DNA of 64,000 bases, taken from positions 124,001 through 188,000 of the IMG/VR virus record IMGVR_UViG_3300028920_000022; one strand, given 5' to 3'. The notes under the pieces were generated by a model. The model made no database searches, was not told where the DNA came from, and saw only the letters and a list, made by a program, of their open reading frames with translations. The number at the start of each line of letters is the position of its first letter. The stretch's first letter is position 1. The position numbers and the translations under genes were made by a program. Positions 5,620 through 48,604 of this stretch are shown here, piece after piece.

Positions 5620-5916
5620 GTGGTGTGCTGTCCACTCTGCAAAAGAAAAGATTGCAATTTTAGCGATCATCATCTAGTTCCTCGCTCACGTGGAGGAACA
5701 CGCCAGGACACCGTTCCTATTTGTTTAGATTGCCACAACGGTGTACATGCGTTCTTTACCAACAAAGAATTAGAAAACGAATTCAACTCTGTCGAGGCGT
5801 TACTGGCTGACGAACGTTTTGCCAAACATCTAAGATGGCTGGCAAAACAAAACCCAACAAGACGTCATCGCTCCAAAAGAGTTCGAGACAAAAAGAAAAG
5901 AAACAGAAGTGGGTGA
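5620..5916 (+). CDS. HNH endonuclease-like protein
   Basis: CPLC...HHLVPRSRGG...CLDCHNGVH. Confidence 0.85.
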   Translation: MVCCPLCKRKDCNFSDHHLVPRSRGGTRQDTVPICLDCHNGVHAFFTNKELENEFNSVEALLADERFAKHLRWLAKQNPTRRHRSKRVRDKKKRNRSG

Positions 5917-6215
5917 GCTTTATTGGCGAAGAATTAGAAGAATATTATAATTCCCAGTACGATAAGTATTACAATTTTGACTACGACTTTAACTACGACT
6001 TATATAAAATAAATTTTGCACACAGCTGGCAACTATGTGAAAAAGAATCTAGAGAATCTTATGACCCGGTATTTGTTTGTAAGGTTTGCGGAATTTACGC
6101 TATTGGTAAACCTACAGATCGTTATTCTCCACATGTTTACGCTTATTATACGACGAATTACGACGAGTCGACAATGTCTTGTGCTGAGATTTGTGTAAAG
6201 GATATAATCGAATGA
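5913..6215 (+). CDS. zinc-finger microprotein with C-terminal IKDIIE-type tag
   Basis: HSW..CKVCG..MSCAEICVKDIIE; GTG start inferred from GTGA overlap. Confidence 0.7.
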   Translation: MSFIGEELEEYYNSQYDKYYNFDYDFNYDLYKINFAHSWQLCEKESRESYDPVFVCKVCGIYAIGKPTDRYSPHVYAYYTTNYDESTMSCAEICVKDIIE

Positions 6216-6424
6216 ACGTTTTATACGGTAGTCCACAAAATATGTCACGCATTACTTTAGACGAAATTCCTACAGATCCAATTATCGAACGAATCAAACG
6301 ACTTGCTTTATTGCGCCGAGAAGAACTACAAACTATATTACAATGTGCACCTGACCCTGAAAAATATAATCAAGAGCTATCTGTAATTAATAATATTCTT
6401 TCTGGTATAGAAGGGCTAGATTAG
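6212..6424 (+). CDS. hypothetical protein
   Basis: ATGA-coupled to previous gene. Confidence 0.6.
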   Translation: MNVLYGSPQNMSRITLDEIPTDPIIERIKRLALLRREELQTILQCAPDPEKYNQELSVINNILSGIEGLD

Positions 6425-6443
6425 CTCAGAAAACTCTTGCAAC

Positions 6444-6683
6444 GTGTCACGAAATGATGTAGAAGAGTTGCCGGAAGGTGTTCTTCCCCACGAATTTCCT
6501 AATGAGAATATAATTTCATACGATAATGTCTGTATCTGGTGTGGCGTTTCGAGCGCAACCATGGTGGACAAATTAAATAGAATTCCAGAGTTGCACGGTT
6601 TAACTAGACGCAGACGTGATATTGACATATACTACCCTTGTCTAAACGAAATTGAGAGAACCATCCACGAAATAATCAAGTAG
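6444..6683 (+). CDS. zinc-finger microprotein with C-terminal tag
   Basis: HEF..CIWCG..PCLNEIERTIHEIIK. Confidence 0.65.
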   Translation: MSRNDVEELPEGVLPHEFPNENIISYDNVCIWCGVSSATMVDKLNRIPELHGLTRRRRDIDIYYPCLNEIERTIHEIIK

Positions 6684-6695
6684 AGGAAAAACAAT

Positions 6696-8036
6696 ATGCT
6701 CACAGATGTTCCCGTTATCGATCAGAAATCTCTTGGACGTATCTTTCGCGTAGGTATTCGTGAAGGTAAAAATATTATGATTTTGGGTCCGTCTGGTGGC
6801 GGCAAAACATTTATTGCTGTGGATATCGCTCATTCAGAAGGATGTCGCCTAGTTTATATTAACTTGGCGGTATTGGAACGTACCGATTTCCAGGGGTTTC
6901 CTGTTATCTCTCAGGATAAAACACTGGTATCATACGCTACTCCTGACTTTTTGCCATTCGCCGACACCAACGAACGTGACGAAAAGAACGCTTTGGAAAA
7001 CCTCTCTACCATTCTCAATGACGCAAAAGATAAAAACATCATGGGAGAGATTGATAAGCGCTTGAATGCCGTGGAATATCGTCGTCAGGCTCGTATTATT
7101 GCGAATGCCATGCCGTACCTTTCGGAAGGCTCCCAAAAATCGCTGAAACCATACCTTAATAAGGTTCTAGCAAACCTCCCAGAAGGAAAACCAATTGTAT
7201 TCCTTTTCGATGAGGTCGATAAAGCCGCTAGCGAAACAATGCAAACTCTTCTGGAGTTCCTGCAGTTCAGAAGTATTAACGGACGCAAACTGGATATTAA
7301 GGCTTGTTTGCTGACTGGTAACTTGCCTGATGAACATGCTGCTTCTCAGCAGATTTCGCACGCCATTACGAAACGATGTAAGTCTTACAAGCTACAGTTG
7401 GACTTCAATCAGTGGCGTGAATGGGCTTATGGTCATGCCGTGCATGATTTGGTTGTTGGTTTCTTAACCGCTAACCCGGACTTTTTGCACAAGACCCCTC
7501 CAGACGGTGATCCTACTGCTTATGCTCTGCCGTCTCCTCGAACCTGGACTGACGTTAGTGATTCGTTGTGGGCTTTGGAAAAAGATAATCAATTCCAAAA
7601 GCTGAATGGCGAGGAGTTGGCTGGGTTGCAAAAACTTCTAATTGCTGGAAGCGTAGGAGACACTGCGGCAATTAAATTCGTTAACTGGTTCAAATACTAT
7701 CGTAAGATGGACCCGGTTGTGGAAGCTCTTTTGGAAAAGGGAAAGATGCCTGACCAAAAGAAACTGGACGCCCAGGAACTGTTTATCTGTGCTCTGTCGG
7801 CATGTTCCCGTGTATATAGAGAACTGAAGCCAAAGAACGAAGACAAAATTAAAAAGTATGCCAAGAATGTTTACAAGTGGATTGGTTCCCTTTCTGTAGA
7901 TATTCAAATGGGAGCTTCTCGTATGGCGTTCGGCGGAGACTTCGATAACATCCAAAAGTACCGTCTGTCGGAAATTGACGAGTTTTCCAACGTCTTCAAG
8001 CACATCAAGAAGACGATGCAAACTAATGATATCTGA
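6696..8036 (+). CDS. MoxR-like AAA+ ATPase
   Basis: Walker A GPSGGGKT, Walker B FLFDEVDKA, TGN sensor, PSPRTW. Confidence 0.9.
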   Translation: MLTDVPVIDQKSLGRIFRVGIREGKNIMILGPSGGGKTFIAVDIAHSEGCRLVYINLAVLERTDFQGFPVISQDKTLVSYATPDFLPFADTNERDEKNALENLSTILNDAKDKNIMGEIDKRLNAVEYRRQARIIANAMPYLSEGSQKSLKPYLNKVLANLPEGKPIVFLFDEVDKAASETMQTLLEFLQFRSINGRKLDIKACLLTGNLPDEHAASQQISHAITKRCKSYKLQLDFNQWREWAYGHAVHDLVVGFLTANPDFLHKTPPDGDPTAYALPSPRTWTDVSDSLWALEKDNQFQKLNGEELAGLQKLLIAGSVGDTAAIKFVNWFKYYRKMDPVVEALLEKGKMPDQKKLDAQELFICALSACSRVYRELKPKNEDKIKKYAKNVYKWIGSLSVDIQMGASRMAFGGDFDNIQKYRLSEIDEFSNVFKHIKKTMQTNDI

Positions 8037-8041
8037 GTGCC

Positions 8042-9547
8042 ATGGAAGTAATTAATAAAACAATCCTTGACCCAAAACAGTTGGGTGGGGATAAGTTCAA
8101 CGAATATAATCAAAAAATCTCGGTATCCAAAGTAGCTCTTGCAAAGAGCCCAGAAAAGGGAGGGATGCCGTTTATATTCGCCTTCACTAGCGTGAAAAAC
8201 CACACGTTAGATGAAGTGAAAATGCCGTACCTAAACAAAGACGGAGACGTAGAGTTCTCTTGTACGGCAGCAACTGATGGCAAAGAATATAAATGGAGCC
8301 CTCAGATTCTGGATATCCTGGGACCACGTGAGGTTGCAATCATCACAGCTCACGAAACCTATCATATTGTGTTACAACATTGTAATGCGCACCGTGCGTT
8401 TGGTAAACACAAAATGGCATGGGCGTTGGCGATTGACTATGTTGTCAATGGTATGATTGAACACGATTTGATTCAAAGTAATCAAATCTCTCAGTACGAT
8501 TGCGATAAAGCCAGAACAAACGGGAACCATCCTATTTGGAAGAATGGGATCGGTGGAACTAAAGGTCCGGTTTATTTCGATGAATTAATGAAGGATATCG
8601 AAAAAACCCTCAAACAACTAGCTGAAGATAAGAAAAAAGGTAAGAAATCTGTCGTTCCTACTGGAAATATTGCCGAAAAACAACCCAAACCGCAGGTTAT
8701 TCGTCCATATGCTGATTATAAGTTGTATGGTCGGTCGGCTGAGGATATTTATGATGAAATTATGAAAAAGATGGAGGAGGAAGCTAAGAAAAATGGTATG
8801 AAGCTTTCTGACCTTCTTAGTCCTGGGGATTTTCACCTGCCTGGTGGTTACGTAATTGGTGGCGGATCCATGATGGACGAACATAAAGAAAACGACATCA
8901 GCCGAACCAAACTTTTGGAAGAGGTTATGGATGCCGTTTCTGCTGCTCGTGCACTGTCTGCTGGTAATATGCCATCAGCTATTGAAGATCAGTTAAAAGC
9001 ATTACAAGAGCCAAAACTTAAGTGGCAGGATATCGTTCGCCATGCTCTGCAAACCACCCGCCAGGAAAAAGGTACGCTTAATGATTGGACGCGCATGCGG
9101 CGTCGGTTGGTTTCTTATGAAATCTTTGTGCCCAAAAAGAAGGATCAACGAGTTCGTTGGCTTTGTATGTTGGACACTTCTGGTTCTATGAGCGATGATG
9201 ATATCGTGTACGGAGTCTCACAGTTAAAAGTTTTGGACGGTAGATCTAAAGGTATTGTGGTTCCCTGTGATGCTCAGTGTTATTGGGACCATGCGGTGGA
9301 AATCCATGGCATGAGTGACCTGCCTAAGGTAAAGCCAGTAGGTAGAGGTGGCACCGTGTTTACTGATTTCTTTGAGAACTACGAAAAGAAGATCGCGGAA
9401 GAGATCGACCTAATTATTGTGATTACCGATGGATATTTGTACGATTTGGACATGAAAAAACCTGCAGTGGATTGTGTGTGGGTTATTACCAACGATAATG
9501 AGTTCAAAGCTCCGTTTGGTAGAACTGCACCCTTGCGTTCATATTGA
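8042..9547 (+). CDS. metallopeptidase-like/VWA domain protein (DUF2201-type), partner of AAA+
   Basis: TAATDG, HETYH (HExxH), MIDAS DTSGS, GRGGT, ITDG. Confidence 0.9.
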   Translation: MEVINKTILDPKQLGGDKFNEYNQKISVSKVALAKSPEKGGMPFIFAFTSVKNHTLDEVKMPYLNKDGDVEFSCTAATDGKEYKWSPQILDILGPREVAIITAHETYHIVLQHCNAHRAFGKHKMAWALAIDYVVNGMIEHDLIQSNQISQYDCDKARTNGNHPIWKNGIGGTKGPVYFDELMKDIEKTLKQLAEDKKKGKKSVVPTGNIAEKQPKPQVIRPYADYKLYGRSAEDIYDEIMKKMEEEAKKNGMKLSDLLSPGDFHLPGGYVIGGGSMMDEHKENDISRTKLLEEVMDAVSAARALSAGNMPSAIEDQLKALQEPKLKWQDIVRHALQTTRQEKGTLNDWTRMRRRLVSYEIFVPKKKDQRVRWLCMLDTSGSMSDDDIVYGVSQLKVLDGRSKGIVVPCDAQCYWDHAVEIHGMSDLPKVKPVGRGGTVFTDFFENYEKKIAEEIDLIIVITDGYLYDLDMKKPAVDCVWVITNDNEFKAPFGRTAPLRSY

Positions 9548-9750
9548 ACAAAAAACAACACGAAGTCCTAATAGGGGGACTTTTAGGAGACGCTTCCCTG
9601 GAATTGTCAGGGAAAATGCGTAATCCTCGTGTTCGTATTGAACGTTCTTACAAAGATATCAAATATTTACAGTGGCAGTATAATGTATTTAAAAGCATGT
9701 GCGGATCCGATGTACATGTTTACTGTAGGGCGCTGTCATGCTGTGTGTAA
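9544..9750 (+). pseudogene. truncated LAGLIDADG homing endonuclease remnant
   Basis: LIGGLLGDASL...YLQWQYNVFK, only 68 aa, 3' end overlapped by next gene. Confidence 0.65.
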
Positions 9751-9886
9751 AACGTGTGGTATACACGTTATTCAATTTCAAGAAGGTTGGCGAATATCAG
9801 CCTATAATAACTCACATAAAAGCTTGGTATTTAAGTGTCCTGATACTATATCTTGCAACGACTTTATTATCCGACAAATAATATGA
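9710..9886 (+). CDS. zinc-finger microprotein with C-terminal tag
   Basis: CKTCG..PDTISCNDFIIRQII. Confidence 0.65.
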   Translation: MYMFTVGRCHAVCKTCGIHVIQFQEGWRISAYNNSHKSLVFKCPDTISCNDFIIRQII

Positions 9887-10104
9887 AAACAAATAATATG
9901 AAAATAGGAACGCACGAGTTCACGCTTACTGGTTCTAACTATACCAAATGTAATTTATGTGGTATGGTGATTTTAGGTTTAAGTCATGGTTGGGTAATCT
10001 CATGCAGAAATAAGATCAGGGGTGATAGAAAATCTAAACCTATAAGCGGCTTCAAACCAGACTACATCTCCTGTAACGATTTTATAATCAAACAAATAAT
10101 CTAA
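9883..10104 (+). CDS. zinc-finger microprotein with C-terminal tag
   Basis: IGTHEF..CNLCG..PDYISCNDFIIKQII; paralog of previous gene. Confidence 0.7.
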   Translation: MKTNNMKIGTHEFTLTGSNYTKCNLCGMVILGLSHGWVISCRNKIRGDRKSKPISGFKPDYISCNDFIIKQII

Positions 10105-10105
10105 C

Positions 10106-11257: not shown

Positions 11258-11332
11258 TGGAAATCCTGTTATGTTTGATTCCAGCTTATACCACGAAACG
11301 GTTTCTTAACAAAATGATATATTATTAAGAGA

Positions 11333-11623
11333 ATGCGAAACAAAAAACCGGAAACCTGGAAAGATATTGTCAAAAAATTGCACACCAATGCGCCTGTTGC
11401 AAAAGGACACAACTGGACTATAACTGGTGGCGGGGGAGGATCGGAAGCTCGCTCATGGAGCCCGTTGTTTGACAAGGAAGCCACGCCAAAACATATTAAA
11501 TACAAATGTTTAAAGTGTGGAGCGACTGCAACCAAAGAGGTGGGCGGAGAGTTTCTGCTGGACAAGCCCGAATATCAAGATTTGACTTGCACTGAGGTTG
11601 CTATACATGATATCATCACCTGA
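11333..11623 (+). CDS. zinc-finger microprotein with C-terminal tag
   Basis: HNW..CLKCG..LTCTEVAIHDIIT. Confidence 0.75.
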   Translation: MRNKKPETWKDIVKKLHTNAPVAKGHNWTITGGGGGSEARSWSPLFDKEATPKHIKYKCLKCGATATKEVGGEFLLDKPEYQDLTCTEVAIHDIIT

Positions 11624-11923
11624 ATGAGTAAGAATATACGTTTTATTGTTGAGGATGTTGGACCAGCTCCAAAAGAAAAAGTATACGTAACCTTTACACG
11701 ATCCAAAAATGGCAGTAGAATAGTTACGGTTAATTGTCCGGCAGATGGAATACAACTTTCTGAAGCAAGAAAAATTGCAGAAGTTTCCGCAGAAAAATTA
11801 GCAAGAACACTTTGTTCTAGTTTGTGGTGGCGAGTTGATACCTTAGATCATGGAAAACGTCTAGCCGCCGCTCTAGAACACGTCATCAAACAGTTGAGAA
11901 ACTATAATGATCGTTCCTCCTGA
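11624..11923 (+). CDS. hypothetical protein
   Basis: Abuts previous stop. Confidence 0.6.
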   Translation: MSKNIRFIVEDVGPAPKEKVYVTFTRSKNGSRIVTVNCPADGIQLSEARKIAEVSAEKLARTLCSSLWWRVDTLDHGKRLAAALEHVIKQLRNYNDRSS

Positions 11924-12230
11924 TGAAGTAATTCTAATGCATCGACAGCTAATGGAATTGCAAGATCAAATCTTTAAGCTTAAATCGGAAATGCAAAACA
12001 AATGCGATCATGATCTTGTGAGTGAATGTAAAGATAACCCTATAATACAGCGTATTTGTGAAATATGTGGATTGTACGAGTGGCAGCATAACCAAGCACA
12101 TTTCAAAAAATTAACCAGCAGTAGGGTTAAATTAGTTTCAGACAGCGCAATGGTACAGCTTCGAATCACACTTCCTCACCACAAATTTTTAACTTCAAAC
12201 GAGCTGCCAGTAAAAGAAATAATTGAGTAA
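11907..12230 (+). CDS. coiled-coil/zinc-finger protein with C-terminal tag
   Basis: CDH..CEICG..LTSNELPVKEIIE. Confidence 0.7.
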   Translation: MIVPPDEVILMHRQLMELQDQIFKLKSEMQNKCDHDLVSECKDNPIIQRICEICGLYEWQHNQAHFKKLTSSRVKLVSDSAMVQLRITLPHHKFLTSNELPVKEIIE

Positions 12231-13116: not shown

Positions 13117-13422
13117 ATGCAACATACAGGCTTTAAAATACAGTCTAAAATTAAATATATGCAGATAGAAGATTTTGTGGAAAACCTTTTATCTGGTGAC
13201 TTGTTAGCAAAGTATAAATCTCATAATTGGAAAAAGAGGGGACGAAATCACGTTATGTGTAAGAGGTGTGGTAGCTATTTTCATTTTTATGATCCACACA
13301 ACAAAAAACAGGACATTACGTATCATTGTCGGTTCTACACATTTGTGGGCAACTGGCGCGAGTGTGGGTTTGATACCATCTTATCTTGTGTAGACATGCA
13401 AATAAAAGATATAATCGAATGA
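13117..13422 (+). CDS. zinc-finger microprotein with C-terminal tag
   Basis: HNW..CKRCG..LSCVDMQIKDIIE. Confidence 0.75.
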   Translation: MQHTGFKIQSKIKYMQIEDFVENLLSGDLLAKYKSHNWKKRGRNHVMCKRCGSYFHFYDPHNKKQDITYHCRFYTFVGNWRECGFDTILSCVDMQIKDIIE

Positions 13423-13853
13423 ATAGTTACAGATATTTTATTATTCACGATACGTGGGGAGATCTTCTTTTTCTGAAGACCCCAAAGCGCTTAGATAAAA
13501 CTATAGTAAAAAAACTGTTATTGGCTGATTACGATACGGTTTTGTTCGCAATTTCTAACAATACAGAAATTAATGTTGAGGCAACTAAAATTAAGGTTAC
13601 AATCCAAGACTATATTACACCAAGTTTCTTTTTAAATTGTAACAAAGAAGATTGGGAAGAAGACGATAATAAGTTTAATTTGTTGGATTCGAATAAGGTT
13701 TTATTATGTTCAGAAAAGTTTATGCGTCAAATGTTTTATTTGTGGAAACAAAGCGCAAACCCTTCAAGTATAGATAACAAAATTCTAAAATGGCTACGTC
13801 GCAACTACAAAGAAGCCATTAAGCTGGCGTGCATCAAGGACGTGGTAACTTGA
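13419..13853 (+). CDS. hypothetical protein with C-terminal tag
   Basis: Ends KLACIKDVVT; ATGA-coupled. Confidence 0.7.
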   Translation: MNSYRYFIIHDTWGDLLFLKTPKRLDKTIVKKLLLADYDTVLFAISNNTEINVEATKIKVTIQDYITPSFFLNCNKEDWEEDDNKFNLLDSNKVLLCSEKFMRQMFYLWKQSANPSSIDNKILKWLRRNYKEAIKLACIKDVVT

Positions 13854-17605: not shown

Positions 17606-18388
17606 ATGAGACCTAAACAAAAAGATCAAAGAAGAAAAACCTCAAGACAGTTTGTTAATGTGCCGGAGGGGGTTTCCATTGTTGTTATGGGAGACGTCCA
17701 CGAACATGAGGAACAGTTCTACGCCACTCTGAAAGAGGTTCGTCCTCGTGAAGATATGTGGCTTGTATCATTGGGAGATATTTACGATAAGGGTTTTGGA
17801 ATTAAATCCGCTGAACGTATTACTGATGAGTTAATTAAACTCCAAAATAAAAACGTTTGTTATGCGGTTCGTGGTAATCATGAACTTAAACTCATTCGTA
17901 AAGCAAGAAAAACCCCCAAACTTACTCCTCAATTAAAATGGTGGTCAAACCAACCACTTGTACTTACATTTAATTTCAAAACCAGAAATACGATAACCGT
18001 ATTACACGCGGGTGTAACTCCCAACATGACCGAAGGAGATTTGGGGCATGGTGTAGAAGTTGTTTATGTTCGAGATGTGGACGAAGATGGACAAATGATT
18101 CCTTTGGTGTGGAAAGATATTAATGGAGTTCAAACTCTAGTTAAATCTAAAGAGGGTGGAAACAATTGGCATGATGTTTACGATGGAAGGTTCGGTTATA
18201 TTGTGGCTGGACATGCTGCCCAACGAGATGGAGAAGCTAAATTCTTTAATTATTCATGTAATATTGATTCTGATATTTATCAAAGCGGTAAATTAACTTC
18301 CGTTGTTTTCAATGACGAGGGTAAGTTGGTTAAAAAAATTATTATGGAGGGGATTGCGCGCAAACCCGAATTAAATATTGCTTATTGA
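17606..18388 (+). CDS. calcineurin-like metallophosphoesterase
   Basis: GDVHEH, GDIYDKG, RGNHE, HAG, GH. Confidence 0.9.
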   Translation: MRPKQKDQRRKTSRQFVNVPEGVSIVVMGDVHEHEEQFYATLKEVRPREDMWLVSLGDIYDKGFGIKSAERITDELIKLQNKNVCYAVRGNHELKLIRKARKTPKLTPQLKWWSNQPLVLTFNFKTRNTITVLHAGVTPNMTEGDLGHGVEVVYVRDVDEDGQMIPLVWKDINGVQTLVKSKEGGNNWHDVYDGRFGYIVAGHAAQRDGEAKFFNYSCNIDSDIYQSGKLTSVVFNDEGKLVKKIIMEGIARKPELNIAY

Positions 18389-18711
18389 TGCTTTTTGTTA
18401 TTGAATATTCAGCGAAGAAACCGTATTTCTTTTTCAAACAGGTAACTAACCTACAAAAAACTGTAGGAAGAGCTGCATTAATTGCAAAAGATCCTACAGA
18501 CTGCGAAGCTCGAATTGTAAAATTATTGCAACAAGAAGACGAATCTTTTATTCAAAATACCGGGTTACAGATTGTACATGTGTCCAGCGGAAAAGAATAT
18601 GCTGCAGGTTTTGAACACTTTATGCTGAGTTTCTTATCTTCTTTTGATGAAATTATTAAAAAAATGCGAAAAACTTACAACGAAGAAGTAATCAAAGATA
18701 TAATTACCTGA
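18385..18711 (+). CDS. hypothetical protein with C-terminal tag
   Basis: Ends YNEEVIKDIIT. Confidence 0.7.
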   Translation: MMLFVIEYSAKKPYFFFKQVTNLQKTVGRAALIAKDPTDCEARIVKLLQQEDESFIQNTGLQIVHVSSGKEYAAGFEHFMLSFLSSFDEIIKKMRKTYNEEVIKDIIT

Positions 18712-21515: not shown

Positions 21516-21800
21516 ATGTGTGATTCAGATCACATCATTTTCACAGACTTTTTAAACCAATTGGGACCCTGCAACGTACTTGCTGTACGGTCCCACCAAT
21601 GGTTTTTTAAGCACCATAGTTACAACTGGGTTAAAGACACTCAGTTGTATTCGTTTGAATGTATAGAATGTGACGCTAAAATAACATTAAATAGTTTGTC
21701 GGATATTGAGTACACGAACATTCAGCGCTTTACTGACAACGGATCTCAGTTTTTGGGATGTAAAGAGTTTCCTGTAGCGGATATTATATTAAATGACTGA
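21516..21800 (+). CDS. zinc-finger microprotein with degenerate C-terminal tag
   Basis: HHSYNW..CIECD..LGCKEFPVADIILND. Confidence 0.6.
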   Translation: MCDSDHIIFTDFLNQLGPCNVLAVRSHQWFFKHHSYNWVKDTQLYSFECIECDAKITLNSLSDIEYTNIQRFTDNGSQFLGCKEFPVADIILND

Positions 21801-22203
21801 AGAAGATCTTAAATGTGACTGTAAAACAGAGATTGAATTAACTCTGCATATAGATGAGGACGACGATATTTTTGTAGAATATTGGGATCCAGATTATTTG
21901 GCTAATCTGTTTCCAAAAACTTTAAAGAAATTGCGAGATGATTTTGGGGAAAGTAGTATTTCTGCTACAAAAATAATAGAAAGTGACAGCACAAAACTTC
22001 GCTTATTCTTTAAAAAAGGAGTTCATTTAGTTTTAGAACTTTATCCACATTGGATATCGGTACAAGTAGAGCATGGTAAAACTAAAATACCTTATAATTA
22101 TTTGAGAACTTTTGAGGTAGATGATTTTATTTGTAATTATATTAGCAAATGTGATGAGTATTTGACGCCGGAAGAAATTGCGATAAGGGATGTGATTGTG
22201 TGA
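21793..22203 (+). CDS. hypothetical protein with C-terminal tag
   Basis: Ends LTPEEIAIRDVIV. Confidence 0.7.
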   Translation: MTEEDLKCDCKTEIELTLHIDEDDDIFVEYWDPDYLANLFPKTLKKLRDDFGESSISATKIIESDSTKLRLFFKKGVHLVLELYPHWISVQVEHGKTKIPYNYLRTFEVDDFICNYISKCDEYLTPEEIAIRDVIV

Positions 22204-22481
22204 GAAAGATCGTCATAAATTCTGTTCAGGAAATGGACGAATGGCTTTCTAATCATCCTGACGCAAAGATGGTTAAAAGAACTGTTAATGATGGAAGTCC
22301 TTACGCTCATGTTCGTTTTATTTCTAAAACAGAAGATGTGAGTTGCCAACTTGGTATGGTGTTATGTACACAAAGTTATTATGCTAGAAAATTAACACAA
22401 GCTTTAGAAGAAGCATCGGAACATGGGGTAGATATTAATAAAATATTGAACGAGTTTTGTATAAAGGACATAATAGAATGA
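22200..22481 (+). CDS. hypothetical protein with C-terminal tag
   Basis: QEMDEWLSNHPDA; ends NEFCIKDIIE. Confidence 0.7.
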   Translation: MRKIVINSVQEMDEWLSNHPDAKMVKRTVNDGSPYAHVRFISKTEDVSCQLGMVLCTQSYYARKLTQALEEASEHGVDINKILNEFCIKDIIE

Positions 22482-24084: not shown

Positions 24085-24527
24085 TGGCTCAAATATTAAT
24101 CCCTTGCAAAGAATGCGACGGTACAGGTTTAGGGATTTATCCTAACGAATGTACTAATTGTAACGGTACAGGAGTAGCTCAACAAGTTTATGACACAACC
24201 ATAAAAGAATGGTTTGATGCATTCAAAAAAGAAGTGGATGATGTTAGATTTGAAATTAAGGAACTAAAAAAGGAAAACAAACAATTAAATGAGTTGATAT
24301 TATGCCTTTTGTTAAAGGATATGGATGAGGATTCGGTTTTTAAGATAAAAAGAAGGATAGACCAAAGTTTAGATTATGAAAGTCGATACAGACCCTACCC
24401 TTCCGATCATGATCCTGGATTGTTGTTGGGGTATAAATTAGAAATAAGCAATGGCAAAATATTAATTCGTTTTGTTGATAGTAATTTAACACTTGAAGAA
24501 GAGATTGCTAAGGAAATAATAGAATGA
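24081..24527 (+). CDS. DnaJ-type zinc finger + coiled coil with C-terminal tag
   Basis: CKECDGTG..CTNCNGTG; ends LTLEEEIAKEIIE. Confidence 0.75.
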   Translation: MMAQILIPCKECDGTGLGIYPNECTNCNGTGVAQQVYDTTIKEWFDAFKKEVDDVRFEIKELKKENKQLNELILCLLLKDMDEDSVFKIKRRIDQSLDYESRYRPYPSDHDPGLLLGYKLEISNGKILIRFVDSNLTLEEEIAKEIIE

Positions 24528-27931: not shown

Positions 27932-28284
27932 GAAAACTCAAGCTCATAATGAGTGATACTAACTTCACTAACGCCGTGGTCCATGATGAAAACGGTGAGG
28001 AGATTGGTTATATATCAGAAATAGCTATACGCCCCAAAAGAAGCATGATGTTTATTCGGGTAGAAGATAATATTTCCAGCACAGATATGGCTACTTTAAG
28101 AGACGTGATAAAGGAATCCTTACACGATGGCTCACCAGATCCTTTTGTTATTTGTACCAACCATTTGAATGTTGGGAAGATAACTTTAGACGATTATCAA
28201 GTGGATAATGCTAAGATTATAGCAAAACATGATGGGGAATGGCTAAGCGAAGAAGATGTAACCATCAAAGATATAATCGAATAG
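27928..28284 (+). CDS. hypothetical protein with C-terminal tag
   Basis: Ends WLSEEDVTIKDIIE. Confidence 0.7.
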   Translation: MRKLKLIMSDTNFTNAVVHDENGEEIGYISEIAIRPKRSMMFIRVEDNISSTDMATLRDVIKESLHDGSPDPFVICTNHLNVGKITLDDYQVDNAKIIAKHDGEWLSEEDVTIKDIIE

Positions 28285-31502: not shown

Positions 31503-31817
31503 GTGAGCGAGTTATATTTATTATTCATACCACCGATTCTTTTAATTGTGTTATCGATAATTGTGTATTTTTTTACCAAACCCACACAATTGCAGATAAA
31601 ACACAATCTTATTGGAACATACGGGGAGGTAATTTATCCTGTTGACAGGCGGGACGGAGCCATTGTAGTATGGGAAGGCGATGAGGAAGTAATTATATTT
31701 TGTAGATCTTATGGATCAAAAATAGCGGAAGGTGCCACAGTCATTATTACTGAGTATGATTTTAGAGAAAGAACTTTTCGTATTGAACCAAGTCCCAGGA
31801 AAATATATAGACACTGA
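31503..31817 (+). CDS. NfeD-like membrane protein (TM + OB fold)
   Basis: TM helix then LIGTYGEVIYPV..G.IVV..IAEGATVII. Confidence 0.7.
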   Translation: MSELYLLFIPPILLIVLSIIVYFFTKPTQLQIKHNLIGTYGEVIYPVDRRDGAIVVWEGDEEVIIFCRSYGSKIAEGATVIITEYDFRERTFRIEPSPRKIYRH

Positions 31818-32146
31818 TGTTTTTAGGCATGGAAGCAGAACCAAAAGAAGAAAAAACAGCTTGGTTGTTAACTTTTCTTTCTTGGGTTGTTTATATTTTT
31901 ATTGGTGTGGTGTCGTCCTATTATAGGTGGGTGATTTTGTTTATTCCTATTATTATGTTGTTAAGTTTTATAGTAGCGGTAGTTGCTGACAAAATGTATG
32001 GTGGTTTTAATCCAAGTTATACGTTGTGGAGCAAAATTAAAACAATTTTTCTCATAAGTCTTTTAGTGCCACTATCTATACCGTGGATTATTAAGTGTTT
32101 GAGAAGAGATTATTTGGAAGAAATAATTCAAGATATAATTGAATGA
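31817..32146 (+). CDS. membrane protein (3 TM) with C-terminal tag
   Basis: Hydrophobic helices; ends YLEEIIQDIIE. Confidence 0.7.
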   Translation: MFLGMEAEPKEEKTAWLLTFLSWVVYIFIGVVSSYYRWVILFIPIIMLLSFIVAVVADKMYGGFNPSYTLWSKIKTIFLISLLVPLSIPWIIKCLRRDYLEEIIQDIIE

Positions 32147-35803: not shown

Positions 35804-35821
35804 GAAAAACAAACCGAAACC

Positions 35822-36352: not shown

Positions 36353-37009
36353 ATGAAAAAAATGAGCTTTGTCCATCCCATGATTTATGAAAAGACACGG
36401 GATGGGGAAATGTTATATGATGTTTATTCGCGCCTAATAAAGGAACGCATAGTTTTTCTAGCAGATGAGGTGGATGTGGAGGTAGCAACAACGGTAGCTG
36501 CTACCTTTTTGTTTCTGGACAGCCAGAGCAAAACGAAACCAATCTCCCTGTATATTAATTCCCCTGGCGGTTCTGTACATGATGGGCTGTTTACCATTTA
36601 CGATGCCATAAATTATATAGAGTGTCCTGTTAAAACTGTGTGCTTAGGTGAGGCTGCTTCCGCGGCTGCAACAATATTGGCTGCCGGTTCACCCGGAATG
36701 AGGTTTGCTACTCCTAATAGTTTAATCATGATTCACCAGTTGCAGATTTCAGATTTGTCTGGTAAAGGAACAGATGTAGCAAAGGAAGCAGAACGGATTA
36801 AAGAATGGAACGAGAGATTGTTTCAAACATTAGCCCGCCATACTGGGCATACTACTGAGGAAATTGCTCAAGTATGTAGAGATGATACGTATTTTAACGC
36901 AAAACAAGCTAAGGAATTCGGTTTGATTGATGAAATTGTTGAACCGAAGAAAAAGATTCCCGATTTAATTACCCAAACCCCAAAAGCAAGACGGAAAAAG
37001 GGTTCGTGA
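36353..37009 (+). CDS. clpP: ATP-dependent Clp protease proteolytic subunit
   Basis: YDVYSRLIKERIVFL, YINSPGGSV, AASAA (catalytic Ser), IMIHQ, RDDTYF..EFGLIDEI. Confidence 0.95.
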   Translation: MKKMSFVHPMIYEKTRDGEMLYDVYSRLIKERIVFLADEVDVEVATTVAATFLFLDSQSKTKPISLYINSPGGSVHDGLFTIYDAINYIECPVKTVCLGEAASAAATILAAGSPGMRFATPNSLIMIHQLQISDLSGKGTDVAKEAERIKEWNERLFQTLARHTGHTTEEIAQVCRDDTYFNAKQAKEFGLIDEIVEPKKKIPDLITQTPKARRKKGS

Positions 37010-40156: not shown

Positions 40157-40181
40157 CAAAAAGCTATCGTTCGGTTATTGT
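40153..40181 (+). promoter_or_regulatory. sigma70-like promoter, probably leaderless
   Basis: TTGACA-17-TATTGT; ATG 6 nt downstream. Confidence 0.65.
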
Positions 40182-40187
40182 TGCAGC

Positions 40188-42921: not shown

Positions 42922-44391
42922 ATGAAAATTAGAAACATACGTTTAGGTTTTGCTACCAACAGTTCTAGTAGCCATAGCATTGTTGTAATTAATGGTGGGG
43001 TTAGCACTTCTAATAGCAATGAACAAGATTTTGGTTGGGATAATTTTACTCTCGGCTCGTATAAATCAAAACTAGAATATCTAGGGCAAATATTAAAAGA
43101 ATCATTTTGTCGTTGGAATTCTTTAGGAAGTAAAGAAGCGGCGCTTCTAGCTAGTAGCTGGTTAGGTATTGATGTAGATCCGAATGGATATATTGATCAT
43201 CAAAGTATGTGGGTGATACCACGTGATTATAAAATTGACTCTTATTGGGGCGCGGGACATATGCCAAGCCGTGAGTTGGTTGAGGCGATGAAATGTGAAT
43301 TACACCGAAAAGATATAGTTATTTTAGGTGGTAATGATAATAGCGACGGACACCCGTTAGCGGATAACGATCTTGCTCCTGCTTTTGCAGGGTTTGATAG
43401 AGATTATTATCGTGGAGAGTGTATAGTAAGGCATGATGAAACGTATGATTATTGGACCATGTTTGATCACACTTCAGGAAATAAAGTAAGATTCAACTTT
43501 ACTGAGAATAGTATTACCAGAGCTGAAGCTCCTGAATTAGTGGATATAAAAATTACTGATAAATGTACCAGGAATTGTAAGTTTTGTTATCAGGATTCTA
43601 AAGTGGATGGTAAACATGCGGACATGTCAGTTATTAGAGAAATTATTAAAACCCTGCATGAAGTGAAGGTATTTGAAGTGGCTCTTGGTGGTGGAGAACC
43701 CACAGAACACCCAGAGTTTATAGCTATATTAAAGAGTTTTAATTCGGTGGGAATTGTTCCTAATTTTTCTACGCGCAATGTAAAATGGGTAAAAGACAAC
43801 ATAGAGGAATTACGTGATGCTGGTGTAGGCGGAATAGGTATTAGTGTTGATAATGTTGAAGATGTAAAACGTGTTCTTTTCCACCTACAGGATGTGAATA
43901 AATTAAATTCACAAGGAGAACATAAACCTTCTATTGTGTTGCATCACGTAGTAGGGGTTGCTCCTGAAAAAGAGTTTGTAGAAATATTAGAATTGGCTCA
44001 AAAGGTTGGATATAGACCATGGGGAGCTAGCGGATGGGCAAATAATCCCTTGCTCCTTTTGGGTTATAAAACTACCGGACGAGGTGGGCAATTTGTTCCG
44101 CATCAGTTTGATGTAATAAAGTTGCTCAAAAATCTTAAGAAAGAACAAGGGTACAACATTGGTGTAGATACGGCGTTTATTGATCAACATAAAGATGAAT
44201 TGTCTAAGCTTACCGATCCGATTTATTGGACAGCAGGCGAAGGTAACTTTTCATTTTATATGGACGCTGTGAACCATAAAATGGGCAACTCTTCATACGA
44301 TCCCTGCCTAATTTCTCTTGCTTTGGGAGATGAATTTAAGGAAATCTATGCGCTAACTCCTGAAGAGAGAATCATTAAAGAGATTGTATGA
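42922..44391 (+). CDS. radical SAM protein with N-terminal TNSSS domain and C-terminal tag
   Basis: IRLGFATNSSSSHS; CTRNCKFCY; ALGGGEP; ends LTPEERIIKEIV. Confidence 0.9.
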   Translation: MKIRNIRLGFATNSSSSHSIVVINGGVSTSNSNEQDFGWDNFTLGSYKSKLEYLGQILKESFCRWNSLGSKEAALLASSWLGIDVDPNGYIDHQSMWVIPRDYKIDSYWGAGHMPSRELVEAMKCELHRKDIVILGGNDNSDGHPLADNDLAPAFAGFDRDYYRGECIVRHDETYDYWTMFDHTSGNKVRFNFTENSITRAEAPELVDIKITDKCTRNCKFCYQDSKVDGKHADMSVIREIIKTLHEVKVFEVALGGGEPTEHPEFIAILKSFNSVGIVPNFSTRNVKWVKDNIEELRDAGVGGIGISVDNVEDVKRVLFHLQDVNKLNSQGEHKPSIVLHHVVGVAPEKEFVEILELAQKVGYRPWGASGWANNPLLLLGYKTTGRGGQFVPHQFDVIKLLKNLKKEQGYNIGVDTAFIDQHKDELSKLTDPIYWTAGEGNFSFYMDAVNHKMGNSSYDPCLISLALGDEFKEIYALTPEERIIKEIV

Positions 44392-46645: not shown

Positions 46646-46823
46646 GAAACCTATTCGTGCAGCTCCGTGCCCGAAGTGCCGTAGTACCAACCTCGGATAT
46701 TGTTTCTGTTTCGGTTGGTTTAGTGTTATCTGCAACGCATGCGGATACAAAGGTCCGGAAACGCAGAACGATGTAACATACATTCAGGCGTGGAACGAGG
46801 TTCCTTATGAAGACACCGCGTGA
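46635..46823 (+). CDS. Lar-like (restriction alleviation) zinc-ribbon protein
   Basis: PCPKC...VICNACG..GP..AWN. Confidence 0.6.
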   Translation: MENKKPIRAAPCPKCRSTNLGYCFCFGWFSVICNACGYKGPETQNDVTYIQAWNEVPYEDTA

Positions 46824-47196
46824 CATTCCTGTTTTAGAAAGAGAATTGCTAAACGAAGTATATGTGGACGTAGATCATCACATTGATGCTGGTGCTTATA
46901 TTTATTTTGGTTTTACCGCAGCCGCAGATTCCTGTTTGGAGAATTGGAAAAAAGAAATTATTGAATACGAAAATGGATGGAATTTTGTTCCCGGAGACGT
47001 GATGCCTTCGGAAAATGATATTGTTATAATTGCTTATTGTTGTACAGGTGGTAGCAAAGATTGTCATGTGGCTTTTGGGTATTTTGATTACGATCAAAAG
47101 AAATGGCGTTTAGAATGTGGTGCGGATCTCGAAGCGTCAGGTCGTGTCGTTTATGCTTGGCGTCATAAAATGCAGCCACCGGAGATGTTGAAATGA
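46807..47196 (+). CDS. DUF551-like phage protein
   Basis: WNFV..MP..VII....W....V.AW..K..PP. Confidence 0.55.
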   Translation: MKTPRDIPVLERELLNEVYVDVDHHIDAGAYIYFGFTAAADSCLENWKKEIIEYENGWNFVPGDVMPSENDIVIIAYCCTGGSKDCHVAFGYFDYDQKKWRLECGADLEASGRVVYAWRHKMQPPEMLK

Positions 47197-47996
47197 GAAT
47201 CTTTTTAGTTCGGCACGGAGAATCCCAAGCAAATGTAGATAAATCTTTGCATAAGATTATTCCAGATCACGAAATTGCTCTAACCACAGAAGGAATGGAA
47301 CAGGCTCAGATTGCTGGACAAAAATTAAAAGAATACCTTAAAGATAATCCTACAGCAAGTATGGATCTGGGTTCATCCTTACTAGACAGCATTATTAATA
47401 TAGCGGCTAAACAAAAAGGTATTGGAGAAAAACAAGTAGCTAACGTCAAAGACTTGATAAGCAAACAAATATCTTCCGGCAAGAAAACTAAAGCCCGGTT
47501 ATGGCATTCGCCATATCGTAGAACCAGGGAAACGGCACGTATAATTTCTGGCGTGGCTCAGGAATATATTCTAGATGTTCGGGAACATATTTTACTTTGT
47601 GAACAACAGTTTGGTTTGTTTGATGGGCTAACAAAAGAAGAATCCAACGAAAAGTTTCCAGATGAATTTCAAACTTTCCAGCATGCTAAGAAATATAATG
47701 GAAAGTTTTGGGCTAGGTTTCCTATGGGAGAGTCTCCGTTTGATGCTGCGTGCAGAATTCACCAGGCATTTGGTACTTTTAAACGTGATGAGGAAAATAA
47801 GAACATCAATGATATAATTGTGGTTTGCCATGGGGCGGTATCCAAACTTTTTACAATGATGTGGCTTCATAAGGAACCGGAATGGTTTCAAAAGGAGCCT
47901 ACGTGTGGTAATTGTGGTATTCGTTTAATAGAAAACCACGAAGATAAAGGTTACATTTTTGGCGGGTGGTTAAATGGCAAAGAGTGGCACTCATAG
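47193..47996 (+). CDS. histidine phosphatase (phosphoglycerate mutase-like)
   Basis: LVRHGES, SPYRRTRET, EQQFG, GES, VCHG. Confidence 0.93.
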   Translation: MRIFLVRHGESQANVDKSLHKIIPDHEIALTTEGMEQAQIAGQKLKEYLKDNPTASMDLGSSLLDSIINIAAKQKGIGEKQVANVKDLISKQISSGKKTKARLWHSPYRRTRETARIISGVAQEYILDVREHILLCEQQFGLFDGLTKEESNEKFPDEFQTFQHAKKYNGKFWARFPMGESPFDAACRIHQAFGTFKRDEENKNINDIIVVCHGAVSKLFTMMWLHKEPEWFQKEPTCGNCGIRLIENHEDKGYIFGGWLNGKEWHS

Positions 47997-48171
47997 CTTT
48001 GTTCCGACTGTTGGCGAAGAAAAATGTTTAAGTTATTTTCGTTGTGTTAACTGTGGGATGTTGGCATTTTTAGCGTATCCCAATTATTATATTATAGCCG
48101 AGCTGTATAATTGGGAAAGTTGTAAAGATTTTTCCTGTAATGAGTGGATTATTCGCGAAATAGTAAAATGA
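47974..48171 (+). CDS. zinc-finger microprotein with C-terminal tag
   Basis: GTHSF..CVNCG..FSCNEWIIREIVK. Confidence 0.75.
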   Translation: MAKSGTHSFVPTVGEEKCLSYFRCVNCGMLAFLAYPNYYIIAELYNWESCKDFSCNEWIIREIVK

Positions 48172-48389
48172 TTAAGATAGGAACTCATATTTTTGTTAGA
48201 TCAGAAACTCCGTCCGGCGGATGTAAACCATTCATTTATTTTAAGTGTAATAAATGCGGAATGTTTGTATTCGATTTTGTATTCGATTCTGCACTTGAAT
48301 CACGGTATATTATTTCTGGAGCATGTAGTGAAAAGATGCCTGAAAAATTCACATGTGATGAATGGATTGTTCGTTCTATAATTAAATGA
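48168..48389 (+). CDS. zinc-finger microprotein with C-terminal tag
   Basis: IGTHIF..CNKCG..FTCDEWIVRSIIK. Confidence 0.75.
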   Translation: MIKIGTHIFVRSETPSGGCKPFIYFKCNKCGMFVFDFVFDSALESRYIISGACSEKMPEKFTCDEWIVRSIIK

Positions 48390-48604
48390 GCCATAAATTT
48401 AGTTATAATTTGAAAAAAGAAATGCGTATTTCTGTAGGCACACATAAATTACGATGGTGTTTGCATGACGATTTAGATTATTTTGTTTGTGAGAAATGTG
48501 GAATTTTAACTTTTAAATCGCGTAGAAAATGGATAACTTACGATTGGCTACCAATAACAACATTTACTTGCGACGAGTGGATAATCAAATCGGTGATAGA
48601 GTGA
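48386..48604 (+). CDS. zinc-finger microprotein with C-terminal tag
   Basis: VGTHKL..CEKCG..FTCDEWIIKSVIE. Confidence 0.75.
   Translation: MSHKFSYNLKKEMRISVGTHKLRWCLHDDLDYFVCEKCGILTFKSRRKWITYDWLPITTFTCDEWIIKSVIE

Follow-up and report, generated by a model that had tools for sequence, protein, structure and literature searches.

A window of 64,000 nucleotides (positions 124,001 to 188,000 of IMG/VR record IMGVR_UViG_3300028920_000022) was analysed, which lies in the 458,729-bp genome of a huge phage from marine sediment. The window contains 12 small ORFs, all on the plus strand, that encode putative zinc-finger microproteins, together with further ORFs that share their C-terminal peptide but not their zinc ligands, and genes for a ClpP subunit, AAA ATPases and VWA proteins with a peptidase-like domain (Table 1). 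The earlier note had described the 12 ORFs as a family mostly sharing a His, a CxxCG motif and a tail Cys, with widely differing segments in between, and had inferred a constant docking helix. This observation proved correct: all 12 ORFs exist, translate as it stated, and share the His, CxxCG, a tail Cys and the same C-terminal helix. Two start codons remain uncertain, as indicated in the table.

Table 1. Features of the window discussed in the text (positions within the window; ZF, putative zinc-finger microprotein).
Position	Strand	Product	C-terminal end	Remarks
5913..6215	+	ZF 1	SCAEICVKDIIE	GTG start overlapping the HNH stop; alternative ATG at 5835
6444..6683	+	ZF 2	HEIIK	Tail Cys one helical turn earlier, at -14
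9710..9886	+	ZF 3	SCNDFIIRQII	Alternative start 9683; His 3 residues before CxxC
9883..10104	+	ZF 4	SCNDFIIKQII	ATGA-overlapped with the previous gene; MKIGTHEF..CNLCG
11333..11623	+	ZF 5	TCTEVAIHDIIT	
11907..12230	+	ZF 6	KEIIE	Tail Cys replaced by Ser; His-His at -17/-16
13117..13422	+	ZF 7		N-terminal helical extension; AlphaFold2 predicts the same strand x4 plus helix core
21516..21800	+	ZF 8	ADIILND	Tag followed by 3 extra residues
26828..27031	+	ZF 9	TCVEGQIKDIIE	
47974..48171	+	ZF 10		First of a tandem triplet
48168..48389	+	ZF 11		AlphaFold2 pLDDT 84.7; 5 strands plus a C-terminal helix at residues 63-72 that starts at the tail Cys
48386..48604	+	ZF 12		
13419..13853	+	Tagged ORF without a zinc finger	CIKDVVT	Weak tag
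18385..18711	+	Tagged ORF without a zinc finger	NEEVIKDIIT	Next gene has its own ribosome-binding site after the stop
21793..22203	+	Tagged ORF without a zinc finger	LTPEEIAIRDVIV	
22200..22481	+	Tagged ORF without a zinc finger	NEFCIKDIIE	
24081..24527	+	Tagged ORF	LTLEEEIAKEIIE	N-terminal DnaJ-type CxxCxGxG motif
27928..28284	+	Tagged ORF without a zinc finger	LSEEDVTIKDIIE	
31817..32146	+	Tagged membrane protein	RRDYLEEIIQDIIE	Hydrophobic segments, then the tag on the predicted cytoplasmic side
42922..44391	+	Radical SAM enzyme with appended tag	LTPEERIIKEIV	Only its 3 closest homologues carry this extension
48609..48914	+	Tagged ORF without a zinc finger	REITIKDIIT	Followed by a convergent gene, so no downstream start codon needs the tag DNA
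36353..37009	+	ClpP protease subunit		Catalytic residues present; candidate reader or end-point of the tag (inference only)
6696..9547	+	MoxR-type AAA ATPase (6696-8036) plus VWA protein with N-terminal HExxH peptidase-like domain (8042-9547)		Flanked by tagged genes here and in the related phage G001; candidate partner (inference only)
55113..56474	+	Classical AAA ATPase		Closest to B. subtilis YjoB and to Cdc48/VAT unfoldases; candidate partner (inference only)

An expanded family with a predicted common fold

To determine the extent of the family, we built a profile from the 12 members and searched the window and the whole genome. The profile found exactly these 12 in the window, so that the note had missed none there, and 106 to 108 in the genome. 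The family has about 105 to 125 members in the genome rather than 12, including a roughly 20-kb tandem array of about 80 genes at about 28.6-48.6 kb. Each encodes a protein of about 60 to 100 residues. In the alignment the CxxC cysteines are invariant, and the His, the Gly after CxxC and the last two Ile are conserved at 90% or more. In 85 aligned members from the genome, the His and CxxC are invariant and the tail Cys is 98% conserved. When about 160 tagged ORFs were examined, the His, CxxC and tail Cys occurred together or not at all: about 120 ORFs have all three (98 with the Cys at -11), and 33 tagged ORFs have none of them.

In contrast to these anchors, the loops between them vary freely in sequence and length. 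Mean column identity is 13%, the spacing from His to CxxC runs from 2 to 92 residues, and that from CxxC to the tail Cys from 10 to 47. The isoelectric points of the members range from 4.1 to 9.9, with a median of 6.2 and a median net charge of about 0, and hence the family is not uniformly basic.

Structure prediction with AlphaFold2, using an alignment of 85 paralogues, gave a model of ZF 11 with a pLDDT of 84.7 and a pTM of 0.71. The same strand-strand-strand-strand-helix core was predicted for ZF 7, although the two are only 15% identical. In this predicted core a small beta-sheet carries the invariant His and the CxxC knuckle. The models, which were computed without metal, place CxxC at a hairpin end and the tail Cys at the N-terminus of the C-terminal helix, completing what looks like a single His/Cys3 zinc site.

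The family has no match in Pfam, PHROG or PDB. Comparison with the Pfam families RYYR-CCHC (PF23674) and DUF7128 (PF23447) gave best E-values of 0.0015 (7 of 85 members) and 0.0079 (14 of 85), none of which reached the gathering cut-off, and the members in the window gave no hit. The fold searches returned no significant match either. The weak top matches included WRKY DNA-binding domains (Foldseek E 1.2 to 6, TM 0.33 to 0.42), and about 11 of the 50 best VIA-align rows were C1 domains (Z 3.7 at best).

The C-terminal tag is shared with unrelated proteins

Whereas the earlier note treated the tail as a feature of the family, at least 10 ORFs in the window without a zinc finger also end in it. 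The tail has the form [ND]-E-x-x-I-[KR]-[DE]-I-I-x, or, over the last 10 to 13 residues, [LI]-[ST]-x-[ND]-E-x-[IV]-I-[KR]-[DE]-I-I-x. In the genome, at least 25 to 45 unrelated accessory proteins end in it, including a radical SAM enzyme and membrane proteins, and at least 23 to 33 tagged ORFs have no zinc ligands. At least three tagged ORFs have hydrophobic membrane-spanning segments. We counted the strict core [IV][KR][DE]I[IV] and found it at 70 ORF C-termini, against 6 of 326,340 internal positions (0.14 expected at C-termini), which is far beyond chance. The last residue is E, K, T, I, V or absent. Tagged genes lie only in the accessory arms of the genome, and none lies in the structural and replication block at 180-380 kb.

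The radical SAM enzyme has the tag only in this phage clade. Of its 120 best homologues, only the 3 closest, at 42 to 51% identity, carry the extension of roughly 12 residues. We also examined the relative G001, a collinear phage of 28% GC with 30 to 60% amino-acid identity to the present one. G001 lacks the zinc family but has 42 ORFs ending in L[KQ][ED]II, mostly from another expanded family that occupies the same genomic slots.

Codon usage of the tag

We then investigated whether the tag is maintained as a peptide or merely reflects the packing of genes. Of 153 tags, 102 are overlapped by the start codon of the next gene. In these tags, Ile at -3 is ATA in 81% (31% genome-wide), Ile at -2 is ATC in 47% (12% genome-wide), and position -5 is G-ending, which creates GGA 9 nt before the ATG. 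Thus in the tightly packed arrays the codons of the tag are additionally constrained to serve as the Shine-Dalgarno sequence, spacer and ATG of the next gene. About 45 tags, however, have no overlapped downstream start, including one before a convergent gene, and these keep the amino-acid motif with near-genomic codon usage. K/R, D/E, I/V and S/T in the tag are each encoded by several codons, and conservation extends over 10 to 13 codons. Conversely, about 105 ATGA-overlapped gene pairs whose upstream gene lacks the tag have unrelated C-termini. The tag persists across phages of 39% and 28% GC, with the ATG in a different register, and four radical SAM orthologues only 42 to 51% identical keep it. 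These results show that the tag is selected at the protein level.

Variation among related contigs

Some evidence for fast evolution of the zinc-finger genes comes from related contigs. Two strain-level contigs differ from this genome almost only inside single zinc-finger genes. One shows 3 non-synonymous changes and a 6-nt indel in 1,370 bp, and the other shows 12 non-synonymous and 7 synonymous changes plus two 3-nt indels. None of these falls in the anchors or the tag. Both contigs are short, and the only gene with enough changes gives a non-synonymous to synonymous count of 12:7, which is relaxed or mixed rather than clearly positive selection. Contigs from two related populations cover flanking genes at 95 to 99% identity but not the zinc-finger genes, and break away at 9693/9722, where a zinc-finger gene starts, although gaps in assembled contigs prove nothing.

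Interpretation

The earlier note had interpreted the family as an adaptor library, in which a constant His/Cys3 scaffold and a constant docking helix carry hypervariable loops, so that each member could bring a different target to one common partner, like substrate adaptors for a protease. Our analysis supports this interpretation only in part. The constant scaffold with highly variable loops, the position of the last ligand and the behaviour of the tail as a separable module are supported. The presence of the tail on unrelated proteins, on a different gene family in a related phage and on a radical SAM enzyme only in this clade goes beyond the note, and strengthens the idea of one common partner. 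Adaptor function for a protease, however, remains an inference. It is made more plausible by an intact ClpP, two MoxR-VWA-metallopeptidase pairs and a Cdc48/YjoB-like AAA ATPase in the same window, but tagged enzymes and membrane proteins fit a general address or degradation label better than a pure adaptor role.

We consider it established by the analysis that the 12 ORFs are real genes of a lineage-specific family, that the tag is portable, selected as protein and attached to dozens of unrelated accessory proteins of this phage and its relatives, and that its codons have a second constraint in the arrays. The remainder is inferred from sequence and models, including zinc coordination, expression, docking and degradation. 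On this inferred reading, to which we give a probability of roughly 0.45, the tag would be an address label read by one shared cytoplasmic machine, and the zinc domain a diversified binding module used in host takeover or counter-defence. The most likely reader would be a proteolysis or unfolding machine: the phage ClpP working with a host Clp ATPase or the phage AAA ATPase, or one of the MoxR-VWA-peptidase pairs. The bearer, and possibly whatever it holds, would then be handed over for degradation or remodelling. Several findings weigh against this reading. The last residue of the tag varies, unlike classic degrons that depend on the terminal carboxylate, and the phage has no ClpX/ClpA-type ATPase of its own. 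Furthermore, in the zinc family the helix is modelled with high confidence, so it may pack on the sheet as part of the fold rather than being free to dock.

In a broader form, which we regard as unlikely on present evidence, a clade of huge phages would use a genetically encoded C-terminal address peptide on roughly a fifth of its ORFs. The peptide would couple rapidly diversifying binder libraries, zinc-finger microproteins in this phage and a helical-repeat family in a relative, to one shared machine, probably a ClpP- or AAA-centred degradation or remodelling hub. This would be a bacterial-virus counterpart of the F-box/PRANC adaptor strategy of large eukaryotic viruses.

Among the alternatives, the one that survives best, though still unlikely, is that the tag is purely a timer degron, by which early accessory proteins would be cleared by ClpP-type proteolysis later in infection, without delivery of any target bound by the zinc fingers. 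This would explain tags on enzymes and membrane proteins as well as on binders, an intact phage ClpP is present, and a C-terminal location is typical of bacterial degrons such as ssrA and the ClpX C-motifs. On the other hand, the terminal residue is variable and often acidic, and about 80% of tag bearers in the two phages belong to hypervariable multigene families, which a simple timer does not predict. Also against this reading, one ClpP paralogue in G001 itself ends in IIDDIIE.

It is less likely that the microproteins are nucleic-acid-binding regulators or genome-coating proteins, with the helix as a structural or dimerisation element. Small zinc fingers commonly bind DNA or RNA, WRKY domains are among the weak fold matches, and transcription-factor or structural DNA-binding roles have been suggested for the zinc ribbon of Bacillus phage G (PMC7824862). 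However, the charge distribution is not that of a basic family, the variable parts are loops of very different length rather than a recognition helix, the only outside homologues are repeats in extracellular surface proteins, the helix motif also occurs on enzymes and membrane proteins, and the fold matches are not significant.

A capsid-targeting peptide, by which tagged proteins would be packed into the huge head and injected with the DNA as a ready-made counter-defence cocktail, like T4 internal proteins or encapsulin cargo, appears more doubtful still. A short, position-specific C-terminal peptide on unrelated proteins resembles encapsulin cargo-loading peptides, phage capsids share the HK97 fold with encapsulins, and counter-defence proteins act best if present at injection. 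Against this, some bearers have transmembrane segments, so that not all could be enclosed in a capsid, tagged genes are absent from the structural block, and the tag has no similarity to known loading peptides. Finally, the possibility that the tag is only a conserved DNA or RNA junction read in frame (a Shine-Dalgarno sequence, AU-rich spacer and ATGA stop/start overlap, or a recombination joint for cassette shuffling), with no role as a peptide, which the overlaps, their codon bias and the exchange of families in the same slots of the two phages might suggest, is very unlikely in view of the tags that persist without an overlapped start and the overlapped pairs that lack a tag.

Accessory genes of huge phages are mostly unannotated, and here a single short peptide sorts about 150 of them into what we infer to be one functional class and provides a direct experimental handle. 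If the tag recruits a protease or unfoldase, the zinc-finger array would be a natural library of small, stable binders aimed at host proteins, useful for finding new defence and counter-defence targets and as a compact binder scaffold. The locus is also a clear case of dual coding, in which a peptide signal and the translation start of the next gene are written in the same nucleotides.

Relation to known systems

A lineage-specific expansion of a zinc ribbon of about 35 copies is known in Bacillus phage G (Iyer et al. 2021, PMC7824862), likewise a huge phage with a very large expansion of a small zinc-binding protein of unknown role. Our profile, however, found no match in the phage G genome (JN638751) at E <= 1, and tblastn against 50,697 phage records found none. 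The present family has about three times as many copies, is arranged as ATGA-coupled tandem arrays, and carries a portable tag shared with unrelated proteins.

Poxvirus ankyrin-repeat/PRANC (F-box-like) proteins and similar viral adaptor families resemble the present system in architecture and genomic behaviour: a multigene family in the variable genome arms, a variable binding domain plus a constant short C-terminal motif, which here is only inferred to dock, and different binder scaffolds in related viruses. There is no sequence or fold relationship, the tag is a predicted helix of about 10 residues rather than an F-box of 40 to 50 residues, and the host is a bacterium without ubiquitin ligases.

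Like the ssrA tag and ClpX C-motifs read by AAA+ proteases, the tag is a short peptide found on unrelated proteins, almost exclusively at the C-terminus, in a genome that encodes ClpP. It differs in being amphipathic and charged, with a variable last residue and, in ZF 8, 3 extra residues, instead of a nonpolar LAA-type end with a fixed terminal carboxylate, and in being encoded in the genes rather than added by tmRNA. Encapsulin cargo-loading peptides and the T4 capsid-targeting sequence are likewise portable short terminal peptides and mark unrelated proteins for one destination, as the tag is inferred to do, but show no motif similarity, and the T4 signal is N-terminal and cleaved.

C1 or cysteine-rich domains (PKC, Munc13, Raf) and WRKY domains are small beta-sheet zinc modules, and one C1 zinc site uses the same ligand order of His, CxxC and a C-terminal Cys. 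The structural scores are not significant (Z at most 3.7, Foldseek E about 1, TM 0.3 to 0.4), the microproteins have one putative site rather than two, and they lack the WRKYGQK motif and the C-C-H-H/C ligand order of WRKY-GCM1 zinc fingers, having H-CxxC-C instead.

The only outside homologues are tandem GH..CTE..YYxCxxCG repeats, an undescribed repeat of Bacillota surface proteins with SLH or choline-binding domains. The profile search gave 1,145 hits, the top ones with 9 to 31 repeats each, per-repeat E-values of about 1e-7 to 1e-9 and a whole-protein E-value reaching 6e-57. These are fused repeats in large extracellular proteins without a C-terminal tag, whereas the phage version is a single-domain cytoplasmic microprotein. 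The homology covers the His..CxxCG part of the module and the following strand, and the tail T-C-x-E of the phage proteins aligns with the ATCTE of the next repeat.

The twelve ORFs and their genomic setting

To examine whether the twelve short ORFs described in an earlier note constitute one family, we translated and aligned them. All twelve were present at the coordinates given in the note, and they encode proteins of 58-107 residues with the pattern His-x-[WFL], then CxxCG, then [LFI]-[ST]-C-x-[DE]-x-x-[IV]-[KRH]-[DEQS]-[IV]-I-x-stop. In the alignment the two CxxC cysteines were invariant, and the His, the Gly after CxxC and the last two Ile were conserved at 90% or more, whereas overall identity was only 17-36%. 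Three exceptions to the pattern were real. ORF 11907 has Ser in place of the tail Cys, whose absence the note had pointed out, ORF 6444 has the Cys one helical turn earlier, and ORF 9710 has its His next to the CxxC. Pfam and PHROGs searches with the 12 members found nothing above cut-off. The observation in the note was thus correct, but it covered only a small part of a much larger family.

The window (bases 124,001-188,000) belongs to a 458,729-bp virus record, here called G000, which is judged complete, has 39.5% GC and comes from a marine-sediment metagenome. The genome encodes a large terminase subunit (TerL), a DNA polymerase, an SbcC-like nuclease and a head protease. The TerL is only about 25% identical to those of cultured phages, the Bacillus siphophages. 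In blastn and tblastn searches of 50,697 phage records no relatives were found, and no phage in that collection resembles the genome at the DNA level.

Size of the family

A profile built from the twelve ORFs found exactly those twelve in the window and 106-108 members in the whole genome. About 80 of them form one head-to-tail array, in which nearly every stop codon overlaps the next start as ATGA, so that each gene lies in the -1 frame relative to the one before. Smaller arrays lie elsewhere in the genome (see table). When diverged copies with shifted cysteines were counted, about 120-125 ORFs carried the full set of putative ligands.

The array consensus is M-K-I-G-T-H-x-F, a variable stretch, Y-Y-[KR]-C-x-x-C-G-[LIM]-[IV]-x-[FY], a second variable stretch, and then [IL]-[ST]-C-[ND]-[ED]-[WF]-I-I-[RK]-E-I-I-[EK]. 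Median length is about 80 residues. The His-to-CxxC spacing runs from 2 to 92 residues and the CxxC-to-Cys spacing from 10 to 47, and mean column identity is 13%.

A predicted zinc scaffold

His, CxxC and the tail Cys were found to be present together or absent together. Ninety-eight ORFs have the Cys at -11, and about 20 have it shifted by an insertion, often by one or two helical turns, whereas 33 ORFs that carry the tail have none of the three. This pattern is what one metal site predicts. AlphaFold2, with 85 paralogues as the alignment, gave a confident model for ORF 48168 (pLDDT 84.7, pTM 0.71), with five strands and a C-terminal helix at residues 63-72 that begins at the tail Cys. The CxxC sits at the end of strand 3 and the following turn. 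ORF 13117, a member only 15% identical, gave the same strand-strand-strand-strand-helix core plus an N-terminal helical extension (pLDDT 73.8). The putative metal site rests on conservation and topology. Searches of the PDB, BFVD, AlphaFold DB clusters and ESM Atlas, and a wide VIA-align search, gave no significant fold match. The best Foldseek rows were WRKY domains at E about 1, and the best VIA-align rows were C1-type cysteine-rich domains at Z 3.7 or lower.

Homologues of the module

A word-indexed protein search returned only the genome's own proteins, and an exhaustive HMMER search of 1.84 billion representative proteins was needed to find relatives. It gave 1,145 hits, which fall into two groups. 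The first consists of small full-length proteins with the same tail. Among the best 150 hits, 38 come from this genome and 14 from other metagenome contigs, including a 3.8-kb contig made of 15 tandem members. A 1.8-kb contig from another metagenome carries two family units fused into one 135-residue ORF, in which the tag of the first unit is degraded and its stop codon is lost.

The second group consists of long bacterial proteins with 9-31 tandem repeats of G-H, about 12 residues, C-T-E, about 9 residues, Y-Y-x-C-x-x-C-G, combined with SLH, choline-binding or Listeria-Bacteroides repeat domains. Where a source names the organism, it is Bacillota. The repeats of these large surface proteins (P0004, P0007, P0013, P0059 and P0116 among the proteins retrieved) have no Pfam family of their own, and they are the only non-phage homologues of the phage module that were found. 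The alignment covers the His, the CxxCG and the next strand. The phage T-C-x-E aligns with the A-T-C-T-E of the following repeat, and the tail proper is not matched.

The zinc-ribbon expansion reported for Bacillus phage G (PMC7824862) is not the same family, since phage G does not contain the family studied here. Among viral contigs, a search with a tightened alignment found nothing outside the genome. Of two DNA pattern scans for the tail in viral contigs, one returned nothing and the other only single, chance-level matches, and the two large contigs among those matches are not relatives.

The tail is a portable tag

We then asked whether the tail is confined to the family. Scoring the last 13 residues of every ORF, with the Cys column left out, revealed about 45 further ORFs outside the family with the same ending, separated from background by a sharp gap. 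At least 23-33 of them have no zinc ligands. They include soluble proteins of 80-170 residues with no known family, a protein with a DnaJ-type zinc motif, at least three membrane proteins and a 489-residue radical SAM enzyme. Pfam and PHROGs searches with 9 tagged ORFs outside the family found nothing above cut-off. The strict core [IV][KR][DE]I[IV] occurs at 70 C-termini and at only 6 of 326,340 internal positions. Tagged genes lie only in the accessory arms of the genome, and none lies in the structural and replication block.

The tag has been acquired and conserved. Of the 120 best homologues of the radical SAM enzyme, only the three closest (42-51% identity, from metagenome contigs) carry the extension L-[TS]-P-E-[ED]-R-[IV]-[IV]-[KR]-[ED]-I-[IV], whereas all the others stop about 12 residues earlier. 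A related phage fragment, G001 (IMGVR_UViG_3300037189_028117; 115.6 kb, 28% GC), is collinear with G000 from 128 to 243 kb at 30-60% amino-acid identity. It has no member of the zinc family, but it nevertheless has 42 ORFs ending in L-[KQ]-[ED]-I-I, which is 37 C-terminal against 5 internal matches of the core. Most belong to a different expanded family with LSEEFIKKH-type repeats (LSEEFIKKH..KID..L..N.NIS), present in about 35 copies, all ending L-K-E-I-I-stop. These sit in the same slots, on both sides of a MoxR-VWA gene pair, that the zinc-finger genes occupy in the window. One of the two ClpP paralogues of G001 ends in IIDDIIE.

The tag is selected as a peptide

Whether the conserved tail reflects a peptide or a nucleotide signal was determined by codon analysis. 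The tag DNA is typically AAG GAT ATA ATC GAA TGA, and 102 of 153 tags are overlapped by the ATG or GTG of the next gene. In that class codon use is skewed, with ATA at -3 in 81% against 31% genome-wide, ATC at -2 in 47% against 12% genome-wide, and G-ending codons at -5, which create GGA 9 nt before the ATG. The tag thus also carries the ribosome-binding site of the next gene. Three controls showed that this does not create the tag. The roughly 45 tags with no overlapped start keep the amino-acid motif with near-genomic codon use, about 105 ATGA-overlapped gene pairs without the tag have unrelated C-termini, and K/R, D/E, S/T and I/V are each written with many codons over 10-13 positions. The translation-initiation region alone was therefore rejected as the sole explanation. 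A promoter -10 box was rejected likewise, because TATAAT appears inside GAT-ATA-AT but its spacing to the ATG is wrong and the codon bias vanishes where no gene overlaps. Therefore, we can conclude that the tag is selected as a peptide, with a second code laid over it in the arrays.

Signs of fast evolution

Strain-level contigs differ from G000 almost only inside single zinc-finger genes. One contig from another sample (L021) is 99.3% identical over 1,370 bp, and all of its differences, namely three substitutions, all non-synonymous, and a 6-nt in-frame indel, fall in one zinc-finger gene between the anchors. A second contig (L022) is 95.8% identical, with 19 substitutions (12 non-synonymous, 7 synonymous) and two 3-nt indels inside one zinc-finger gene, none of them in the CxxC or the last 20 residues, and a single further difference upstream of that gene. 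Assembled contigs from another marine sediment and from a marsh cover the HNH, MoxR, VWA and neighbouring genes at 95-99% identity. However, they give no depth over the zinc-finger genes at window positions 5900-6500, 9900-10100 and 11100-11500, and they diverge at 9693/9722, where a zinc-finger gene begins. These data are sparse, and gaps in assembled contigs prove nothing, but they are what a rapidly replaced gene class would show.

A model for the tagged proteins

The analysis itself establishes a conserved scaffold, with putative zinc ligands and free loops, and a portable C-terminal peptide under protein-level selection that is shared by unrelated accessory proteins and by a different expanded family in a relative. 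That the peptide is an address label for one cytoplasmic reader, and that the expanded families are libraries of binders, is inferred, as are zinc coordination, binding to a partner and any degradation of the bearer. The note had interpreted the ORFs as an adaptor library in which a constant scaffold and docking helix bring different targets to one common partner, and our results support this interpretation in part.

We place about 0.6 on a common-partner address label of some kind, and within that, about half on a proteolytic or unfolding machine, which may process the bearer alone or also its bound target. The window offers several candidate readers. One is a ClpP with intact catalytic residues, the only ClpP in the phage, although the phage has no ClpX/ClpA-type ATPase. 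Another is a classical AAA ATPase. The third is a pair of MoxR AAA ATPases, each accompanied by a VWA protein with a peptidase-like domain. This pairing is known from other jumbo phages, where it was proposed to act as a chaperone (PMC7824862). In both G000 and G001, tagged genes sit immediately on both sides of the first pair.

Among the alternatives, a timer-only degron remains possible though unlikely. A role as DNA-binding regulators is also unlikely, since member pI spans 4.1-9.9, which argues against a uniform nucleic-acid-binding role. A capsid-loading signal appears doubtful, and a pure by-product of gene junctions is the least likely, in view of the codon controls.

Large expansions of small zinc proteins in huge phages have one published precedent, that of phage G, which is a different family. 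We found no described phage system in which one short C-terminal peptide marks about a fifth of the ORFs, across unrelated folds and across related phages with different expanded families. The nearest functional analogy is the binder-plus-docking-motif families of large eukaryotic viruses. The finding is directly testable, while its mechanism is still inferred.

Other features of the locus

The window also encodes an RNA-repair style gene set and several further ORFs, which are listed with the other features in the table.

Positions of the arrays, candidate readers and neighbouring features in the window and in G000
Position	Reference	Strand	Feature
roughly 28.6-48.6 kb (loci L002, L003)	G000, outside the window	minus	Array of about 80 family members
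1.8-7.2 kb; 385.6-388.3 kb; 399 kb	G000		Smaller arrays of family members
0-50, 80-175, 380-400 and 410-458 kb	G000		Accessory arms
180-380 kb	G000		Structural and replication block
35278-36647	G000		Region compared with strain-level contig L021
5003-5615	G000		Region compared with strain-level contig L022
36353-37009	window		ClpP protease subunit with catalytic Ser, His and Asp in place
35929-36282	window		DksA/TraR-type zinc-finger gene next to the ClpP gene
6696-9547; 22780-24084 and 28285-29622	window		Two sets of a MoxR-type AAA ATPase plus a VWA protein with an N-terminal metallopeptidase-like domain (DUF2201)
55113-56474	window		Classical AAA ATPase; closest solved relative Bacillus subtilis YjoB, followed by Cdc48/VAT unfoldases; conserved at 56% identity in G001
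52930-55116; 40143-41207; 5620-5916; 10106-10567	window		Type IA topoisomerase with zinc ribbons, FtsK/SpoIIIE-like ATPase, small HNH-like ORF, and ORF starting MEIERKF that looks like a CYTH domain (the last two judged by eye only)
19861-21093, 33817-34458, 49398-50576	window		RNA-repair style gene set: T4-type RNA ligase, NADAR domain protein and RlaP nucleotidyltransferase
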